Below, in pieces: positions 10,708 through 57,400 of a stretch of 64,000 bases of DNA (positions are counted from its first letter, which is position 1; each line of letters starts with the position of its first letter). The position numbers and the translations under genes were made by a program. The stretch is from Mytilus edulis (lineage: Eukaryota), in assembly GCF_963676685.1 (NCBI RefSeq), contig NC_092345.1, positions 93,930,001 to 93,994,000 of the forward strand, written 5' to 3'. The notes under the pieces are model-generated. The model was not told where the DNA came from, did no database searches, and worked only from the letters and a program-made list of their open reading frames with translations.

Positions 10708-10970
10708 CAGCATTATACGCAGTGTTCACAGCATTATATGAAGTGATCACAGCATTATATGTAGTGCTCACAACATTATATGAAGTGATCACAGCATTAT
10801 ATGCAGTGCTCACAGCATTATATGCAGTGTTCACAACATTATACGAAGTGCTCACAACATTATATGAAGTGCTCACAACATTATATGAAGTGCTCACAAC
10901 ATTATATTAAGTGCTCACAACATTATATTAAGTGCTCACAACATTATATTAAGTGTTCACAACATTATAC
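10708..10970. repeat. 21-bp minisatellite inside the left TIR (~12.5 units)
   Basis: Unit ca(g/a)cattatatgaagtgctca with variants; explains the spurious repetitive ORFs at 10700-10986. Confidence 0.92.
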
Positions 10971-13528: not shown

Positions 13529-13770
13529 GTATAATGTTGTGAACACTTAATATAATGTTGTGAGCACTTAATATAATGTTGTGAGCACTTAATATAATGT
13601 TGTGAGCACTTCATATAATGTTGTGAGCACTTCATATAATGTTGTGAACACTGCATATAATGCTGTGAGCACTGCATATAATGCTGTGATCACTTCATAT
13701 AATGTTGTGAGCACTACATATAATGCTGTGATCACTTCATATAATGCTGTGAACACTGCGTATAATGCTG
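13529..13770. repeat. 21-bp minisatellite inside the right TIR (~11.5 units, inverted)
   Basis: Reverse complement of the 10708-10970 array, exactly one unit shorter. Confidence 0.92.
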
Positions 13771-28064: not shown

Positions 28065-31000
28065 TTAATTGCTTTTGTTAAGTTTTGCTGTGGAATCCCG
28101 GTACTGTGCTACTTCTGCACCTTCCCAGTGTTTAACTGACAGTGGATCTAAATATCTGAAACATATTTAATAAATGTAAAAAATGACAATTTTCATGAGA
28201 AGACATGCATTTTCATATTCTTAAGTACTTTAAAGCCTCGGGACGTGAAATTAGAAAATACACATTGCTTTCTTAAATTAACAAACAAACAATAGAAACA
28301 GTGAATACAAAAAAGTTCTTTACTCTATAATACCATTGAAACACGTAAAACCATTTTAAACATTTCAATTTTTCATATCAAAGAACAAAAGCATTTAATG
28401 ACAACTAGTTAAAAGTAAAACTATTTAACATGTTAACATCATACAGTCCTACATTCACATGCTGAGAAATAATCAGCAAAACTACATTGACCCCACAGCT
28501 ATATATATATATAGCAGATCTAACATTGTTTGGTTGATGTTTAGACGAGTTGTATATATATACATATATGTATTTATACATATAAATGTATTTTGTATTT
28601 TTTGACTTGCTGACACAGTGTTATTTTGCAAAAAATGTTCATGGAAGTCATTTTTACTTTTCGTATGTATTGATAACGTATCTTGATCTTAAACTGTTAT
28701 CTTGCACAGTTTTGTATAATGTAAAATTACTTTGTTTTATTGTTTCTTTCTTATTTTTTTGCTTAACTTACGTTTTGATTACATAACTTGACACCTGTTT
28801 CTCCTTTTCCGTTAGTGGATTGTATACTGAGTCAAGGTTCTTTTTCATATTCTCTAAACTAAATGAAAAGTAATGGACATATTGTAAGGAAAATTTGATA
28901 TTGAACAATAGATACAAAATAAATATTTGAATATTCTTCAACTACATCTATGAATTGTAGAAATATATAGACTCTTGAACTCCAGAAAAGATAGTAGCAT
29001 CAATGAGTTCGATAAATAATAATTTTTCTATATTTAGTTAATTTTTGTCAAATGACAATGATTCTGTAAAGCATCAAATCTTTTAAATCCAACTTTCTTA
29101 CCTTGCAGAACTGACCAATGTTGTAGCTACTTCTTGTTGTAAAGTAAAAGCTGTTGCTATTCGGGAAATATCTACATTTTGTGCCTTCAAAGTACAAATC
29201 AGTTATACATAATAAGAATAAGATTGATTGATTGTTGGTTGCTTTACGCCGCAATAAGAATAAGGAGGCGTGTCATGGTTTTTTAATGAACAAATATCAA
29301 CCAGAAACCAAAATGACGCGGATACAATCAATTGTTGTTCACCGTGTGACCTTTAAAAGCGAGAAAACCCCAGGCATACCGTATCGTTATATCACAACAC
29401 ATTTAAAGAACAAAATAAAGGAAATCAATTGGAAATTGACTATTTGACGAAACACAGATATAAAATGAAACAGACACAAGTACAGGTCTGAGAGTACTGG
29501 TATAATTAGGTTATACCATAACAAAACATTGATTTTAAAACAGTGCAATATTTAAAACGGAAAGAATATATCTGTAAATCATATTGCAACTTAAGGAATA
29601 ATATGCGTCCTGTAAAAGTTCTCAGCAACTAGTTGTTTTCGATATTATGTAAATTCACAATATATTTACCTTACAGTACTCTGCACATTTCTTGCAAGCA
29701 TCTTTGATTTCAGGTAATGCAGGATGCCATTCTGGAGGTCCTCTATTAGAAAGTAGCCCCATACCAATAGGCGAAGCATTGACAATACCAATACCATTTT
29801 CCTATTAAAATACAATGCCAATAATATTGATGGTTCTTGTATGATACGAATTAATACTTTGAAATATTTAGTACAATGCATCCAAACTACCTCTTTGTTA
29901 ATGTTGGTATTTACTTATATGTAGCATAGTAAATATTGATATTGAGACTTTCTGAGTTTTTTTAATACTTTTTTTGTGTGCATATATCCATATTTTCATA
30001 CGACAGTTGATATACACTCGTTTGATGTGTTTTAGCTTTTGATTTTACCATTTGAATACGGACTTTTTGTTTTGAATTTTCCTCGGAATTCGGTATTTTT
30101 TTATTTTTGTTTACTGTTTTCAGTCTATAACAAATAATTTAAAATTGCCTTATACAATATTTTCCAGATAAAACATAATATAAATGTTGTTCAATAACAT
30201 AAAGTTATAAATAAGTTTAAAGAAAGATAATCTACTCTTTAACAAAGATAACATATAATAATAGAAACTCCTTTACAAAACAAAACAAAAACCCCAATCA
30301 GACTCAAGTTTGTGTTTATTACTAGTGAATGTGAAAAGAAACGCCTTTGCAGTTTAATTAAGATGCTTGGTGGAATTGTTGACCCATATCTTTGATGAGT
30401 AAAAAGAGTTTTAATACCTGAAAATATGGAATATAATCCACCAGTGAGTTATCGTGCATACATGCTCTACAGTATGTTAATACGGTATCAATCTTGATAG
30501 TACTTTTATCTATCACTGTTCTGAAAAGCGAAAAAATGATAATGAGACCATTTAACATTCCAAACAAATTTTCAAAGTTCACAATTAATATTGCAAAATG
30601 GTGTTAATAAAAAAAAGAAGTTTGCATTACAAATGAATGATACATTTCAAACTCTACCATTCTCTTCCATAACAGAGGTTTTAAGTATCATAAAGGCTGA
30701 TAGGTTTTAGTTATTTCTATTGTGTTTCTTTCCCTTTTGTGTATTTGATACAACAGAGCACAGCAACACTAGAAGTGAACACATACAGTAGCTTCTATTT
30801 TAGGATTGAGTCATGCGCTTTGTTTGAGGTAATTAGAATTACACTCAGTCTAAATGTGACAATACTGAGATGAATGAAATGTCAGGTTCGCTGCTGTAGA
30901 CGACTTGGTTTTGGCAATTTGTTGTTACTTTCATATACGTAAGGGTTCGCTTGGTATATTGTGCTGAATTCTGTATTTTCAGTTAACTTCACATCACCTA

Positions 31001-34000
31001 TCATCAAATAATGGTCGTGCTAAAGTAGTGGTTTTCTTAATTGACTGCTCAGCAGAAACAGTGATAAAAGACAACAATCGGACTGTGTCGATACAACTGC
31101 TGTTAGTGGTTTCCTCTAATAGAGTATCAACAGCCCAGCAGTCAACACTTCGGTGATGACATGAATTATCATTGATATTGGGATATTTATAAATATATTG
31201 TGTAATATTAACGGTACCAATTTTCCTGCACCAGATGCGCATTTCGACAATACATGTCTCTTCAGTGATGCTCGTGGCCAAAATAATTGAAATCCAAAGC
31301 TTATATAAAAGATGAAGAGCTATAATCCAAAAGGTCCAAAAAGTATAGCCAAATCTGTGAAAGGAATCACAGCTTTGCATGAGGGAGATACATTCCTTAA
31401 TTTATAATAATGTCTAACATTTTGTTTTTGGAGTTGTTTTAAATCTTATGATTTGCTACCCCAGGAATAGATTACTTAAGCTGTATTTGGCCTAACCTTT
31501 CAGAATTTCGACCCTCGATCAATGATTTTAATGTCCGTGCGTCTCAAGTACAAACTAAAAGCCTGATATCTTTGAGGGTTTTTTTTAATTGTCAGTGCAT
31601 TTATACGTTTGTTCCATACGAACATCCCATTATATGTAGTGTTGCTTTTCAAAGTTCTCTTTCTATTTACAATTGTTTTTATATCTGATTTAAAATTCTT
31701 GACTGAAAGCATTATTTTAGAACATGTAGTTTAAATGACGGGATATCTCGGGTAAATAAATGTTAAATTAACATACGCCTGAAAGAAAGAAAAAGATAAG
31801 CTAGAATAAAATATCTTCAGATTATCAGTACACAATTTCATATGGTAACGATATTGACTAACGCCTTTGTTATGAAATACGCACGGATACATTTAAAAAC
31901 AAATATAAAAAAACTCACCTAAAATTTTCTAAAGGATAACCTGTTATGCCAATAAACTTTGCCTTTCCACTGTCTTTGATTTTCTGGAGAGCTGGTAGTG
32001 TTTCATTGATAATTATGTCTAAATTAGGCGCAAATTCCATGTCGTGCACCTAGAATACATGTACATAACTTTTCAAGACCATACCCCTAGAATTTAATAC
32101 CAAAATATAAGTTCTATTTGCACATAGTAAAAACTCATCAAAGAAACATGATGAAAAAAGGAAATAAATTAAAAGTGTGAAGGTGCAAATAGGCATTTGA
32201 AGATTCATCCTTATCAATAAGTATAAATATCATTTAGTGATTGCATAAGGTCTATCTGTTAAGTATTTACATGTGTTAAAAACGTACACTGACCGTAGAG
32301 TATCATTACTAGTATAGAACATGTATTGCGGGTATCTCGGAATCATTTTGAAATACTGTAACTCGAATAGTTCCTGGTTGTCACTGTTGTGGTATAAAAT
32401 TCAAGAGCATTGAGGACCCAAAATCCAAAAAGTTTTGCTAAAACTCGAAATAAGGACACCTGAATAGTTTAAATTCTATTTTTGCTTTTCTCCTTTTACC
32501 AAAATCATATCCATAAATAAAGTCAACAGTAGTATACCGGTGTTCAAACAAAAACAGTTTTTTGTGTTCTAATGAAGATTTGTATTTCAATGCTCAGTAT
32601 TAGACTGTATTATGAAGTCATATATATGACAGAATTATGCAAAACAAAAATACTATTCTATTGTGTGAATCAGATCATAAACACTGTAGACAAAATCTAT
32701 GCACATTATAATTTGTACAACATTACAATTTGTACACACTATACACATTGTTAATTTTTTGGTATTTGACTTTCATGCTTACTTCTTTTGTGAAGACCGA
32801 TTGATATTGTTGGTTCCAAATGAAAGCTTTGTCTATGGCAGTGTTGAATAATCTTTTTGGTCTTTTGATAGGGGTTATCCCAGCGCTGGTTTTTTTTTCA
32901 GAGATTTTGTTTTACGTAGGAAATATTTCTCTTCATTATCAATCTAATTTAGATATAGAACTGTGATTTTTTTTATACTTCACTAAATGGAGTATGACGA
33001 AGTCAGAGTTCAAAATTTAAATAGATTGATTTACTGTGTGGATCATGCGTTCATCAATCAACCATTCTTTTGCTCTCTCTTTACAAGTTTTTTAGTCTGC
33101 CAGATGCTTGTAAATATTCACATTTCAGTGAGTGCTTGCATATAATATATCCCAGTGAACTTGATATAAAGGATACTACCGCAAGTAGAAGATATAATTC
33201 ATATCTTGATCTCGTCTTCGATATTGTCACAGATCTAGAATCTAAGACAAACGTAATAGTTTTAGCTTTCCAATTGTCAATTCACCCCGATTCATCGTCC
33301 ACTATATAACTTTTATTTTGTTTCCTAATGAACTGTTGCTAATAAGAAACAAATCCTGTGTTTTCTTGCCGCTTTCTTTACTTCCTTTTGGTTCATGACA
33401 ATTTGGTTTAGGAAGCGATCTCAGCTGATGTCTTGCATTCAACGGGACCCTGTTTTACTGAGTATTATTTTTTGTGGATGTGAGAATGCTATTGAATTTC
33501 CTATTAATCTCAATGTCGGCGGGATGATTCTACTTGCAGGTTGCTTGAGCCTGTTATTTTGGCTTATAGTATATGAGTTCAAAGTTTTCATTTATTTTTA
33601 TTCATTCTGGTCCAAAATATATATCATAAAAATATTTCCTAATCTGTTTAAATTTTCTGTTTTTATAATATTGAATCATTCGAAACACTAGTGTTTTTCT
33701 ACCACTAGTATAGATTACCAAATTTTTATTTGGCACAACTTTTTGATAATTTTTGGTTTTAATGCGTCTCAGTTCACACTTTAATAAGGCCTTTCAACTG
33801 TATTGATAAGAGCGTCACGGACCAGGATTAGGAAGGGAAAAAAACATATTTAGCAAACACATTTATATGCCTGATAACTTTAATGAAGTTTTATAACATT
33901 TACAAAATGTTTGACAATACAAATTGAAACAAAAAGATGGTCCACAACTTATATTCTCTAGAAGCTTTATAATCTAAAAACTGGTTAACATGACACAGAA

Positions 34001-37000
34001 TAGATTCTTTCCTATATAAACCGACGATCTTTTTAGAATAAAACAAATAAACACATCATTAATACCAGGATCAAAATTTTATATTTACGCCAAACGCGCG
34101 TTTCGTCTTAAAAAGACTCATTAGTGACGCTCGAATCAAAAAATGTTTGAAAGGACAAATAGAGTACAAAGTTGAAGAGCATTGAGGACCAAAAATTCCT
34201 AAAAGTTTTGCCAAATACAGCTAAGGTAATCTATTCCTCAGATAGAAAAGCCTCAGTATTTCAAAAATTCGAAGTTTTGTTAACAGTTAATTTATAATTA
34301 TGAACATATTATATCAATGATAACGCAAGTCAACACAGAAGTGCTGACAACTGGGCTGGTGATATCCTCGGAAAATCAATCTCCACCAGCAGCGTCATCG
34401 ACCCAGTGGTTGCAAATAAACTCATCATAAATACCAGGATCAAAATATTATATTTACGTCAGACGCGCGTTTCGTCTTAAAAAGACTCATTAGTGACGCT
34501 CGAATCAAAAAAATATAAAAAAGGCCAAATAGAGTACAAAGTTGAAGAGCATTGAGGACAAAAAATTCCTAAAAGTTTTGCCAAATACAGCTAAGGTAAT
34601 CTATTCCTGAGGTACAAATGAGTGAATTTAAAAGACAAAAGGTCATTTCAAGAATAGAATAAAATAAATTTGGTCTTAAAATTAAACTGGTTTTTTTTTG
34701 CTTTGTATAGTTTTGTTAATATTGAAGTAACCTTTTCACTACTATATATCGTAAAACATTTTATAAGACAGTTGTTTTTCACTCGTTTTGTTGTTATGTT
34801 TGATAATTTTTGATTTTGTCCGTTTTTATGGATTTTCTTTTACGAATTTGCCTTGCAGAAGACGGATTCAACAGGGTTACGAAAAATGTAATATTAATTC
34901 TATACATTATGAGTTCCATCGTTCGTTTCGATGGACGTTGCATTGATGTTTGTTCTTTGTTGCACTTCTGTGTTCTGTTATTTCGTTGTTTTTCTCTTAC
35001 AGTTGACGAGTTTCCATCGGGGTTGTAGTTTGTAACCAGGATTTTTTTTTCTCTCAATCGATTTATGACTTTTGATCAGCGATATGCTACTGTTGCCTTT
35101 ATTTGTACCTTTATCTTACCTGTATGATATCAATGTATTCCAACCCATGCTCTGTAAACTCTCGTCTACAATCTGTATTACCCTTTATCTTACCTGTATG
35201 ATATCAATGTATTCCAACCCAAGCCTCTATAAACTCTCGTCTACACTCTGTATTACCCTTTATCTTACCTGTACGATATCAATGTATTCCAACCCAAGCC
35301 TCTGTAAACTCTCGTCTACACTCTGTATTACCCTTTATCTTACCTGTATGATATCAATGTATTCCAACCCACGATCTGTAAACTCTCGTCTACGCTTAAG
35401 AATAACAGTACTATAGTCGTAGCGGAGACAGTAAAACGGAAATATGCGACGGTCAAATAAAAATTGACGGTGTCAACATTTTAACTACAGTACTGTTATT
35501 CCGGTTATAATGCATTACAAAAAAGAAACAATACGTTAGAGCTTGAAAAAATGTATAAATTTGACAAACAGAAAAAATCCACGAAACTTAATGAACAATT
35601 TTGGCGTTAAGGCGTCATGACTGAACGTGACGTCATACAAATGAAATCTTACTAACTGGAGGTTATTAGGTTACCTCTACGATTCAAATTCGGATAAAAT
35701 CACATTAAAACGGCGAATTAGAGTTAAGTGTTGTTTTATTTTCAATACTATTATAGTAATCAAACATTTGTTGATCCATTCAATTCAAAACGGCGGGTCC
35801 CTCTTAAGTCACGCCTGGTCAACTGTGGATTTGACGGTAACTTCTAGCCAATGAAAAAGAGTGTTACATAAAAATTGCATTATAATCTGTATTACCCTTT
35901 ATCTTACCTGTATGATATCAATGTATTCCAACCCAAGCCTCTGTAAACTCTCGTCTACACTCTGTATTACCCTTTATCTTACCTGTATGATATCAATGTA
36001 TTCCAACCCACGCCTCTGTAAACTCTCGTCTACACTCTGTATTACCCTTTATCTTACCTGTATGATATCAATGTATTCCAACCCAAGCCTCTGTAAACTC
36101 TCGTCTACACTCTGTATTACCCTTTATCTTACCTGTATGATATCAATGTATTCCAACCCACGCCTCTGTAAACTCTCGTCTACACTCTGTATTACCCTTT
36201 ATCTTACCTGTATGATATCAATGTATTCCAACCCACGCCTCTGTAAACTCTCGTCTACACTCTGTATAACCCTTTATCTTACCTGTATGATATCAATGTA
36301 TTCCAACCCACGCCTCTGTAAACTCTCGTCTACACTCTGTTTAACCCTTTATCTTACCTGTATGATATCAATGTATTCCAACCCAAGCCTCTGTAAACTC
36401 TCGACTACACTCTGTATTACCCTTTATCTTACCTGTATGATATCAATGTATTCCAACCCAAGCCTCTGTAAACTCTCGTCTACACTCTGTATTACCCTTT
36501 CTGCTCTGAAATCAAACATGTTCTCTACCTCTGGCTGATAACGTCCAACTTTTGTTGCCAAATAATAAGATTGTCTTTGAACTGATGGCAATGCCTAAAA
36601 TGATACATGTTTTTAAATGTTTTTTACACTGGGTGTGGATTCTTTGGTTTTGTGCCGAAGGTTGCTGTCTCATCGCCATATTATGCCTAAAACTTTGTCA
36701 CTTTTTTGTAGTCTTATGTAGGCAAAACGCGCGTCACTGCTGATGGACGTTTATCGTCCCCGAGGGTATCACCAGCCCAGTAGTCAGCACTTCGGCGTTG
36801 ACATGAATATCAATTATTTGATCATTTTTATAAATTTCCTGTTTACGAAACTTTGAATTTTTCGAAAAAATAAGGATTTTCTTATCCCAAGCATAGATTA
36901 TCATAGCCGTATTTGGAACAACTTTTTGGAATTTTGGATCCTTACTGCTTTGCAGCTTTGTACTTGTTTTTGCTTTATAACTATTTTGATTTGAGCGTCA

Positions 37001-40000
37001 CTGATGAGTCTTATGTAGACGAAACGCGCGTCTGGCGTAGTATATTATAATCCTGGTACCTTTGACAACTATTTTGTCAATTTGTTTTGGTTTAAAATCA
37101 ATCCTTTGTCCTTTGTCCATACTGTATAGCATTAGTTGTTGAATGTAAAAAAAACGTTGATAACATTTGGAACACAAATGCCTGCTCCTGTATCATATCC
37201 TTTGATTTGTTCTTATTATATGGTTTCATATTCCATTTAAGGAACAACAATTCAAATAATATGTATGAATGGATGCAGTTTAAAACAAGAGTTCAAATAA
37301 TGGAAAAGCTCCTTCTTAATAATAATTTGGAAAAGATATCATACACGCAATGTATTGTTAGTGTCTTTGTCTACTATCTACAATTTTTAAAAAATAATTC
37401 CATATGTATATCTATTTCGAGTTTTTTTTTTATTATTATAAACGTTTACCCAGTTGTAGTTACATAGCTGCTAAAAATTCTATAAATATACTCTTCCTTG
37501 TAAAAGATTTGCATACCTTGCCTAGAACTGTTTCTGATTTACCATGACCATACCAAGGAGCGGTGTCTATATAGTTGATTCCACTTTTAAGGACGAACTC
37601 AACAACTTTCTGTGACTCTGCATCATTAGTTTCATGAAAAACGCTGCCTAGTGAAGAAGCGCCTGTTTTGAATTACAGAAATTATTTGATTAGTATTTAC
37701 CAAATATGAGTAATCCAACCGGAAACGTATTGTGGTATGCATGATGAGTTAGATAAAAAAAATATATGATAAATCTACCACTGAATATGCGATATCAAAC
37801 ATGGATATGAATGAGCTCATCATAAATAAAAGGCTGAAATATTACATATTTCAGATGTGCGTTTCGTCTACAAAAATAAATCACTATCAATATAATAGGT
37901 ACGTGCAAGGTAGGTCGAGCAGAATGAAGTTTGGCAAATTTGCACTGTCACTGACTAGAAATAGTTATCAAAGGTACCAGGCTTATATTTTGATTCGTCA
38001 GACGCGCGTTTCGTCTACACAAGACTCATCAGTGTCGCTCAAATCCAAAAAATAAAAAAAGGTCAAATAAAGTATGAAGTTGAAAAGTATCGAGGACGAA
38101 AGTTTTTGCCAAATTTGGAAATGAATGAACTCATCATAAATACCAGGCTGAAAATTTGGTATGAAAGACACGTGTTTCATCTACAAAAAATCATTGGTGA
38201 CGCTGAAACCCAAAAATATAAAAAGGTCAAAGAAAGTATGAAGTTGAAGAGCATCGAGGACGAACGCTTTTGCCAAATCAGCTTAGCTAATTTGTTCATG
38301 GGTGGAGCATATATAGTATTTTATAAAGTTTTGTAAACATTTTATTAATAATTATGACCATATCAATGTCAATTCTTGTCTAGCTTGTCATGGACGAAGC
38401 GGTTGTAACCCAACTCATTATAGATGCCATGCTTGCAATTGTGTACGTCGGACGCGCGTGTACAACTCACAATTATAAGACATGGATTCTACGCCATAAC
38501 CAGGATAACTTTTTAAGTTACAAGATAATGAATAATACCAAGAGCGCATTTAGCTTTACAATTTAAAAGGTCCGTAGCCTATGTGTTGCTTTTAATCATT
38601 TGAAGCGTTAGTGAACTGCTATAATGTTGGAGAGTTGCTAATAAATTACGATATACTCTAACACAAATAGGTTGGGGAGCAGATCTGCTTACCCTTCCGG
38701 AGCACCTGAGAATACCCCTAGTTTTTTTGGTGAGGTTCGTGATGTTTATTCTTTAGTTTCCTATGTTGTGTCATGTGTGCTGTTGTTTGTTTGTCTTTTT
38801 CATTTTTAGCCATGGCGTTATCAGTTTGTTTTAGATTTATAAGTTTGGCTGTCCCTTTGGTATTTTTCGTCCCTCTTTTAAATAGTTTATGCTTTTGATT
38901 TTAGACTTTTTCAATTGTGATGTGATTTCCTTTGCATTTTTTCCAGATAAGGAACCGGACCAAATTCGAGGACAATAAAATCTCTTAAGCAAACATAGGT
39001 TTAGCACTTCTAGCAAACCACTTCTACAAACACGTGTTTTTCCTCACAAAACGAATAATCACCTGTTTAAATGATATATCGATATTTGAGGTATGATACA
39101 GACTTACTTCATCTTGAAAGTAAGTATAGTTAGGTGTCATGACAATACATACCGTAACTGAGAACTGATACTTTCATGCCAGTGTTGCCCAAGTCGTTAT
39201 ACCTCATCTTTGATACTGAATCCCCATCATGGAATTCCTCGACAAAAGTTTCTGGAAACCTGAAATGTTCAATTTATTTATTTAGAATCTCTATTTCCTA
39301 AAACTGCTTCATTATTCAATAGAAGTTTCTAATTGAAGAATGTACAAACCGAGAAACGTTTTAAAACGAATGCTTTATAGCTGAATGTCCATCAATGTGC
39401 ACCATCAATGGCTAGTATTACAATTTCGGTTGGGGTCAATACTGAAGAGACATGAGATGAACTTTTTACTGTTAGAGGTATTAGCTATCAATTTGTAACA
39501 ACGATCAATCATTTTCGAATCTCGCATAAATAGATTTATATCCACAGAATGACTGGATGTCCCTTAATTTACAGTTAGCTTGACAGTAAATACGATCAAA
39601 GATATTCTCTACATAAACAAAGGTCTTTCGATTGATTTTATGAAAGAAAATGGTTTGGATTGACAGGCAGTAAATTATTTGAAGTTCTAGAATTAAACAA
39701 TCTCAAGATACTGTATAAGATTGGGAGTCTCCCTTTTTATCAGTTCTAATAAGATACTAGTAACGTATGCAATGGCTCTTTTTAACTGCTTTTCGAATCC
39801 TTTATTATATGAGATAACATTTCAATATTAGAAAATAGCTTCATTTAAGGAACAATTTATCTTCTATTAAACAGCTACTTGATTAATTGTCTGTATACGT
39901 CAAGTGTTATGAATCGAATAAAACTGAACCGTTACATGATCAGGATTTGGTCAATATTTACATCTGTATACATACTGTACTTATAGGTCGTTATACGGTG

Positions 40001-47737: not shown

Positions 47738-52572
<4,835 letters not shown>

Positions 52573-54456: not shown

Positions 54457-57400
54457 ATGGATTCAACAACAACATCTCCAAAGAAACTGCAGAAGAAAAG
54501 GACTCAGCAATACTCTATGTGTTTTCTATACAACACTGGAGAAGCTATGTCCAAGTTAACAGGACTGACTGTTGCTACATGTAATCCTTCTACAGAAAAA
54601 GGCAAAGCAACAACATCAACTGAAGAAACAAAGGAGGCAACAGGTAAATAGGTAAAAAAGAATGATTCTATTGTAAATGAGTATTCTATGTTACAAGTTT
54701 GTAAAAGTTAAATTTTTAACCTTGGAACGCTACTCTGAAAGTGCTAATAATACAAAGAGAGTAAAAAAATGCATTTATAATATTATCCAGTACAGTTATG
54801 TCCCCTGATTTGAGCAAATTTTTCAAATGTTAATATATGGCAAAATTAGATTATATCACTTTAAATCAATGATTACTGAGACATTGTAGACTATTTGTAG
54901 TGTTTCTCTTCAATATATATAAATCTTGAAGAATATGCAATAGATTTTAAGGCTTACAACTTTAAAAAAAAAAAAAAAAAAAAAAACTAGTTTGTTTGCT
55001 TTGTTTGCAAAAAAGACACATAATACCTTGTATAAATCAAGTAACAAATCCAAGATATTGGTACCTTATTAACACAGTTATATTGTTGCTCTGAGAATGA
55101 TCTCCCTGAAATAAATAGTGATAAACATTTAATAAAAAAGATGAAGAAGCAAAAAATATATTATTGAGTGAACGAAATTATAGAAAAATGGAATGTTGTT
55201 AGTACATATAAAATAGAAAAAGATGAATACTATTAGTTGAAGCAAGTTTAGATGGGGTTCTGTGTATTTACATTGTTTGTACAACTCTCCTTACTGATGC
55301 CATATTTTGGAATTTCCGTGACCTAAATGGTTCACGAAAATTAATATTTTTATATATAGTATAGTAATAACGATTGTCTGATTCATTGTTTTCTTGTACT
55401 GTTAATCCATGAAATTGCAAAAGAGATAATAAGAAAATTTAATTTATTTCTGTTTTTCAGTACAACAAAGACCAGATTTTACTACCGTCTCAGAAAAAAT
55501 GTCCTGTAATTACTGTGAAGCTGACTTTGAATCAAGGGAAGAACAGGTAACTACATTTATTTTACCAACAGTAATTTATTGAAAGTTTTCTAGATTAATG
55601 CTGTGTGCTTAATTAAAAGATGTTAATATAGATTAGTTTAAACATGTTTTATTTGTTTAAGTACAAATTGGATAAGACACAAGTCAAACAGACTTATGAA
55701 GTCTTCTCCATTTAACATTTATAGCAATATAATACAAAAATATATGTATGACCATGCATGTGTAGAATGGTATATCTATTTAATATACCGGTATATAAAT
55801 TGTATATATAATATGGATATATGTCAAAAGATGGAAAATTCAAGAAAAAATTAAAAAAAATACAGAAAAAAGTAAAAATAAATAAATGAGTGTTTAGAAA
55901 ACAAAAACACAAAAAATAAAATACAAAATTTAAAAACGAAAAAAAGGACAAAAATAATATAGATATATATTGTTAACTTTTTATACGACCGCAAAATTTG
56001 AAAAAATTTTCGTCGTATATTGCTATCACGTTGGCGTCGTCGTCGTCGTCCGAATACTTTTAGTTTTCGCACTCTAACTTTAGTAAAAGTGAATGGAAAT
56101 CTATGAAATTTTAACACAAGGATTATGACCACAAAAGGAAGGTTGGTATTGATTTTGGGAGTTTTGGTCCCAACATTTTAGGAATTAGGGGCCAAAAAGG
56201 GCCCAAATAAGCATTTTCTTGGTTTTCGCACTATAACTTTAGTTTAAGTTAATAGAAATCTATGAAATTTTGACACAAGGTTTATGACCACAAAAGAACG
56301 GTTGGGATTGATTTTGGGAGTTTTGGTTTCAACAGTTTAGGAATTAGGGGCCGAAAAAGGGCCCAAATAAGCATTATTCTTGGTTTTCGCCACAATAACT
56401 TTAGTTTAAGTAAATAGAAATCAATGAAATTTAAACACAATGTTAATGACTACAAAAGGAAGGTTGGTAATGATTTTGGGAGTTTAGGTCCCAACAGTTT
56501 AGGAATTAGGGGCCAAAAAGGGACCCAAATAAGCATTTTTCTTGGTTTTCGCACCATAACGTTAGTATAAGTAAATAGAAATCTATGAAATTTAAACACA
56601 AGGTTTATGACCATAAAAGGAAGGTTGGTATTGATTTTGGGAGTTTTGGTCCCAACAGAATAAGGGGCCCAAAGGGTCCAAAATTAAACTTTGTTTGATT
56701 TCATCAAAATTGAATAATTGGGGTTCTTTGATATGCCGAATCTAACTGTCATGACTGTGTATGTAGATTCTTAACTTTTGGTCCTGTTTTCAAATTGGTC
56801 TACATTAAGGTCCAAAGGGTCCAAAATTAAACTTAGTTTAATTTTGACAAAAAATGAATCAGTTAGGTTCTTTGATATGCTGAATCTAAAAATGTACTTA
56901 GATTCTTGATTATTGGCCCAGTTTTCAAGTTGGTCCAAATCGGGGTCCAAAATTAAACTTTGTTTGATTTTATCAAAAATTGAATAAATGGGGTTCTTTG
57001 ATATACCAAATCTAACTGTGTATGTAGATTCTTCATTTTTGGTCCTGTTTTCAAATTGGTCTACACTAAAGTCCAAAGGGTCCAAAATTAAACTTAGTCT
57101 GATTTTAACAAAAATTGAAATCTTGGGGTTCTTTGATATGGTGAATCCAAAAATGTACTTAGATTTTTTATTATGGGCCCAGTTTTCAAGTTGGTCCAAA
57201 TCAGGATCTAAAATTATTATATTAAGTATTGTGCAATAGCAAGTCTTTTCAATTGCACAGTATTGCTCAATGGCAAGAAATATCTAATTGCACAATATTG
57301 TGAAATAGCAAATTTTTTTTTAATTAGAGTTATCTTTCTTTGTCCAGAATAGTAAGCAAGAAATATCTAATTGCAAAATATTGTGCAATAGCAAGATTTT

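Follow-up and report, generated by a model that had tools for sequence, protein, structure and literature searches.

The intron that follows exon 4 of an aldo-keto reductase (AKR) gene in Mytilus edulis opens with 11 extra copies of its own exon–intron boundary. In the repeated unit of 75 bp, the 3′-terminal 66 nt of exon 4 (RVIQSVDESLQRLGLEYIDIIQ) are followed by the first 9 bases of the intron, and the first unit of the array spans the boundary itself. Judged from its sequence, the array has the defining anatomy of the exon–intron-boundary minisatellites (the mirage or F7-IVS7 type) already described in human and amphioxus. We think it probable that the mussel array is a minisatellite of this type, that it originated by slippage, grew, received an interspersed repeat and was homogenised, and that the first donor is the one used, the array having no regulatory role. 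Coordinates below refer to the window, the stretch of 64,000 nucleotides that was analysed (contig NC_092345.1, positions 93,930,001 to 93,994,000 of the forward strand), which contains no N.

The model of the host gene was built by exon-by-exon comparison with XP_071158143.1, a RefSeq protein of M. edulis (351 aa) whose residues 5–351 are 100% identical to the translation of the exons in the window. The upstream exon for residues 1–4 lies further 5′ and was not located. The gene and the exons on either side of the array-bearing intron are:

28068 to 39261, minus strand: L-galactose-dehydrogenase-like aldo-keto reductase gene (XP_071158143.1, PF00248, plant L-galactose dehydrogenases).
About 39261–39151, 37662–37517, 36588–36433, 32049–31920, 30525–30418, 29801–29670, 29187–29104, 28860–28771 and 28154–28068, minus strand: coding exons of the AKR gene.
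36433 to 36588, minus strand: exon 4 (156 nt), from acceptor ttttag/GCATTG to donor CAG/GTAAGA (PF00248 match, XP_071158143.1).
31920 to 32049, minus strand: exon 5, with acceptor tctag/GTGCACGAC at 32049; V-H-D are its first residues, the catalytic His being encoded at 32046–32044 (XP_071158143.1; HD aligned to CHD of 7smi).

The exons match Pfam family PF00248, with exon 4 covering positions 60–107 of the family (E = 4.3e-8). In a comparison with the solved plant L-galactose dehydrogenase 7smi, XP_071158143.1 gives E = 1.6e-89, and its QVHD aligns with QCHD of the plant enzyme. On this alignment the mussel protein is a close relative of the plant L-galactose dehydrogenases in which the catalytic His is retained, and its activity is predicted. 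Exons 4 and 5 are separated by an intron of 4.4 kb. Their junction in XP_071158143.1 reads IIQ/VHD, which requires the donor at 36432 and the acceptor at 32049 (tctag/GTGCAC). A search with the exon peptide led to full-length relatives and to a cluster of nine Mytilus proteins that includes XP_071158143.1; at the exon 4–5 junction all nine have IIQVHD or IVQVHD (i.e. the first donor), and repeat-derived residues are inserted there in none of them.

Tandem Repeats Finder reports the 75-bp period in two blocks, one at 35886–36500 (8.2 copies, 98% matches, score 1174) and one at 35108–35393 (3.8 copies, 95% matches). The two are parts of a single array that has been split into eight and four donor-bearing units by a 490-bp interspersed repeat within unit 9. 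Numbered from exon 4 into the intron, the components are:

36424 to 36498, minus strand: unit 1, in which the 66-nt end of exon 4 runs into GTAAGATAA, with the G of the authentic donor at 36432 and an in-frame TAA at 36426–36424 (IIQ/VHD junction of XP_071158143.1).
35899 to 36423, minus strand: units 2–8, seven full-length copies of 75 nt that each contain a pseudo-donor CAG/GTAAGATAA (Tandem Repeats Finder, motif positions).
35886 to 35898, minus strand: first 13 nt of unit 9, severed from the remainder by the inserted element (sequence, element alignment).
35396 to 35885, unstranded: the 490-bp interspersed repeat copy inside unit 9 (genome search, alignment with 11 copies).
35335 to 35395, minus strand: remainder of unit 9, with a pseudo-donor at 35343, a 1-nt deletion and substitutions (motif positions, alignments).
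35111 to 35334, minus strand: units 10–12, with pseudo-donors at 35268, 35193 and 35119, unit 12 being 74 nt long (Tandem Repeats Finder, motif positions).
35108 to 35112, minus strand: distal copy of an AAAGG microhomology, whose proximal partner lies at 36496–36500 in exon 4 (sequence).

The splice signal CAG/GTAAGATAA is present in all 12 units, and the donor nonamer is intact in each. On the minus strand GTAAGATAA starts at 36432, 36357, 36282, 36207, 36132, 36057, 35982, 35907, 35343, 35268, 35193 and 35119; the spacing is 75 nt from 36432 to 35907, followed by a gap of 564 nt before 35343. The donor (CAG/GTAAGA) agrees with the consensus at eight of nine positions and is thus a strong site. 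Read in the frame of exon 4, the nine intron bases give V-R-stop (GTA-AGA-TAA). The AAAGG pentamers bracket the founding 75-nt segment, and beyond the distal one the unique intron runs on as TACAAATAAAGG. Such an arrangement is characteristic of tandem duplication mediated by microhomology. Slippage or a template switch between these pentamers, 75 nt apart, probably started the array, and the first duplication would have taken in 66 nt from the end of exon 4 and the adjoining 9 nt of intron.

A first-pass annotation, made from the DNA letters, had described much of this anatomy. Motif positions and Tandem Repeats Finder agree with its account of a 75-bp unit made of the end of AKR exon 4 and a donor, with 12 donors in all, and comparison with XP_071158143.1 bears out both its numbering of the repeat-bearing exon (36588–36433) as the fourth coding exon and its choice of 36432 as the real donor and 32049 as the acceptor, with the His codon at the start of the exon that follows. 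Its reading of V-R-TAA past the first donor, ahead of the exon with the catalytic His and making a likely NMD target, is recovered in the exon frame, and the AAAGG microhomology that it reported is found at 36500–36496 and 35112–35108, in keeping with an origin by slippage. It had missed the 490-bp element in unit 9, the 1-nt deletions in units 9 and 12, and the array's restriction to a single locus.

The element within unit 9 belongs to a family for which a first look at the genome gave at least 1297 candidates. Family members are about 555 bp long, with a hairpin of about 75 nt at one end and termini TTAAGG...TTAGAAT, and most sampled copies lie 1–3% from the consensus. Alignment with 11 full copies shows that the copy in the window keeps both termini, and that an internal deletion has shortened its outer hairpin arm by about 60 nt. 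It is 13.7% diverged from the consensus of these 11 copies, whereas the 11 themselves are 1–3.4% from it. In genome searches the best other copy was 87–88% identical to the window element and none exceeded 88%, and on this ground we rejected a recent insertion from a close sibling copy. Insertion into unit 9 was clean, with array sequence on either side. Since the element sits inside a unit, the array is older than the insertion, and by this reasoning one or more complete distal units must already have been present when it occurred. We also rejected the idea that a transposable element had spawned the array: the unit is unique to the locus, and the element was inserted into the array and is not its source.

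The units vary little. Units 1, 6 and 8 are identical, and the remaining complete units differ from them by one to three substitutions; a single nucleotide has been deleted from unit 9, and another from unit 12. Units 5–6 repeat the sequence of units 7–8, marking a block duplication of 150 bp, and a G/T variant is interleaved along units 1–8 (T, T, G, G, G, T, G, T). The block duplication and the interleaved variant are direct evidence of turnover within the array, and unequal exchange or further slippage would account for its lengthening. The units flanking the element on both sides are 0–3 changes from the exon copy, with one private change each in the distal units 10 and 11. With the element diverged by 13.7% and its flanking units still nearly identical to the exon, we infer that the units have been homogenised since the insertion, by gene conversion or turnover (concerted evolution). 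This age argument presupposes that the divergence of the element accrued largely after it inserted, in which case one would expect roughly ten changes in every 75 nt. The likely sequence of events is then that the interspersed repeat landed in one unit of an existing array, in which gene conversion or turnover went on afterwards.

The same homogeneity could be read as the mark of selection on a cluster of U1 snRNP sites, in which bound U1 would aid the first donor or suppress premature polyadenylation within the 4.4-kb intron. Near-identity to the exon on both sides of an old element is what such selection would produce, as is a donor nonamer intact in 12 of 12 units. The conservation covers the whole unit, however, and not the donor in particular, and concerted evolution suffices to explain homogeneity, as it does in the amphioxus mirages (PMC3087553). 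Selection of this kind is in our judgement very unlikely, including in the light of the genome-wide counts given below.

A search for the array across the 1.37-Gb assembly returned matches at one locus only, and no second haplotype of the array was found in it. Being confined to one place, the array is a single-locus minisatellite and not satellite DNA. The first-pass annotation had labelled it a satellite and had seen in it a direct view of satellite birth from coding DNA; the label does not fit a single locus, and an array that predates a 13.7%-diverged element and shows ongoing homogenisation is not newborn.

Tandem arrays are error-prone in assemblies, and one amphioxus mirage was mis-assembled in the draft genome (PMC3087553), so the true mussel locus might have a single copy or far fewer copies than the assembly gives. 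The copies carry structured variants, however, and a complete element lies within one unit with array on both sides. The contig is also chromosome-sized, and similar arrays occur at many other loci. An assembly artefact is extremely improbable on these grounds.

We also considered whether the array encodes a repeated protein domain and rejected this, as every unit has an in-frame TAA and the annotated proteins lack repeated residues. The exact exon 4 read-through open reading frame was absent from the protein collection searched. An open frame of 225 aa runs through the array on the plus strand; the search returned no homologue of it, and it is taken to be a by-product of the stop-free 75-nt period.

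The window holds other repeats as well. At 56063–57216 two kinds of tandem array adjoin, one with a period of 162 bp and the other of 126–261 bp (74–89% matches); by appearance these are satellite-like repeats of the ordinary intergenic or intronic sort. A 21-bp unit is repeated about 12 times at 10711–10969 and again at 13530–13767, some 2.5 kb away, the two consensus units being reverse complements; the pair resembles the inverted terminal arrays of a mobile element. At 49770–49859, on the minus strand, a perfect tandem duplication (two copies of 45 bp) involves a 3′ splice site, each copy comprising the site (ttccag/G) and the first 39 nt of an exon with an isopentenyl-diphosphate-isomerase-type motif. 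This duplication is in frame (15 codons), and a protein spliced from the upstream acceptor would be 15 residues longer.

Boundary arrays are found in several human genes: the 37-bp VNTR in intron 7 of F7 and the minisatellites of IFI6 (6-16) intron 2, CBS intron 13, LMNB2 and PDGF intron 4, in all of which the first monomer spans an exon–intron boundary (PMC1557585). The mussel array resembles them in this placement, in the succession of an authentic donor and a row of identical pseudo-donors, and in copy number (5–25) and unit size (37–100 bp), which are comparable. It differs in having a donor closer to the consensus, in being split by an inserted element and in its bivalve host, and each unit includes 66 exonic nt as against 4 in F7. 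The amphioxus mirages, found in globin and Adh3 genes, are likewise exon-boundary minisatellites of an invertebrate (units of 10–160 bp) that occur in several genes of one genome and evolve in concert within each cluster. Their length varies among haplotypes, and RT-PCR found regular splicing undisturbed (PMC3087553). A further likeness is to the Rogers model of intron gain, in which, as cited in PMC3087553, tandem duplication of an AGGT-containing exon segment reiterates the splice signal. The mussel array differs from the model in this cited form by having no new intron; its copies lie within an existing intron, each with an in-frame stop. A literature search yielded no report of such arrays in Mytilus or molluscs.

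These precedents bear on which donor is likely to be used. In F7, LMNB2 and PDGF the authentic upstream donor alone is used, and in IFI6 and CBS the next two donors are used too, constitutively (PMC1557585). By analogy, the acceptor of exon 4 would be paired with the first donor, at 36432, in producing the normal 351-aa enzyme, and the 11 downstream copies would be silent pseudo-sites. The grounds for this splicing part of the reading are precedent and the annotated protein. Any later donor would bring an in-frame TAA ahead of the exon with the catalytic His, and the resulting transcripts, having five further junctions downstream of the premature TAA, would probably be targets of NMD. If there is leakage, the next one or two donors would be its source, giving exons of 231 and 306 nt in premature-stop transcripts that NMD would remove. 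Since the human counterparts use the most upstream donor and at most the next two, copies beyond the third are expected to matter little for splicing, a donor-choice rule that comes from mammalian cells and not from molluscs. Appreciable leakage to the pseudo-donors is conceivable, the site being a strong one and perfect-consensus pseudo-sites having started to be used in F7 minigenes (PMC1557585).

Copy number had also been proposed, in the first-pass annotation, to tune productive splicing and enzyme dosage. Under this model the downstream donors would take a copy-number-dependent share of the transcripts, these would be truncated and subject to NMD, and the length of the array would set the level of the enzyme. 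All 12 donors are indeed identical and strong, each of the downstream ones would add an in-frame TAA before five further junctions, and in IFI6 and CBS the two nearest pseudo-sites are in constitutive use (PMC1557585). The annotated AKR protein nevertheless needs the first donor only, like arrays in unrelated genes across the genome favour a mutational by-product, and the choice in the human counterparts of the most upstream donor, or of the next two at most, leaves tuning by copy number unsupported. We regard dosage control by decoy donors as unlikely. Most likely, the array is neutral or slightly costly and is not a regulator.

The AKR locus has counterparts elsewhere in the genome. A search for three CAGGTAAG motifs at 40–70 nt spacing gave 1136 genome matches versus 381 for the reversed pattern, numbers that count matches rather than arrays and are confounded by array size. 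Each of the three arrays sampled starts at an open frame that looks like an exon and follows an acceptor, and its unit is composed of that exon's end and the donor. All three are on a chromosome other than that of the AKR locus:

C1:6487500–6496500: boundary array of 78-bp units, 66 or more in number, at an exon for a glycogen-debranching enzyme (Pfam GDE_C, E = 1.3e-9).
C1:67405500–67411000: boundary array with a 65-bp unit and 31 copies, at a coiled-coil-like exon.
C1:90853800–90856200: boundary array with a 53-bp unit and eight copies.

Boundary minisatellites are common in the M. edulis genome. Their occurrence in unrelated genes is better explained as a by-product of mutation than as regulation of particular genes, and the novelty implied for the AKR array in the first-pass annotation gives way to a class with published examples and several members in the mussel genome. 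The roughly threefold excess over the reversed motif could be cited in favour of a selected U1 cluster, but that comparison is subject to the confounding by array size noted above. A broader reading is that mussel genomes make and keep exon-end/donor arrays above chance, either through duplication targeted to 5′ splice sites (such as transcription- or U1-linked replication slippage) or through selection for U1 clusters; the AKR array would then be an intronic control element of a housekeeping gene, and hence exon-identical across the old element. We consider this quite improbable and favour an unselected boundary minisatellite of the mirage or F7 type.

Taken by itself, and as far as the present evidence goes, the AKR locus is an unexceptional case of a class already described. 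Where identical 5′ splice sites stand in a row, nature has set up an experiment on how the spliceosome chooses between equivalent donors. In the mussel gene there are 12 of these near-consensus sites, eight before and four after a 490-bp spacer, and the same genome has many sister loci. Combined with RNA and population data, it would allow the rule that the most upstream site wins, drawn from mammalian cells, to be tested in a distant animal, and could reveal any fitness cost of boundary minisatellites.
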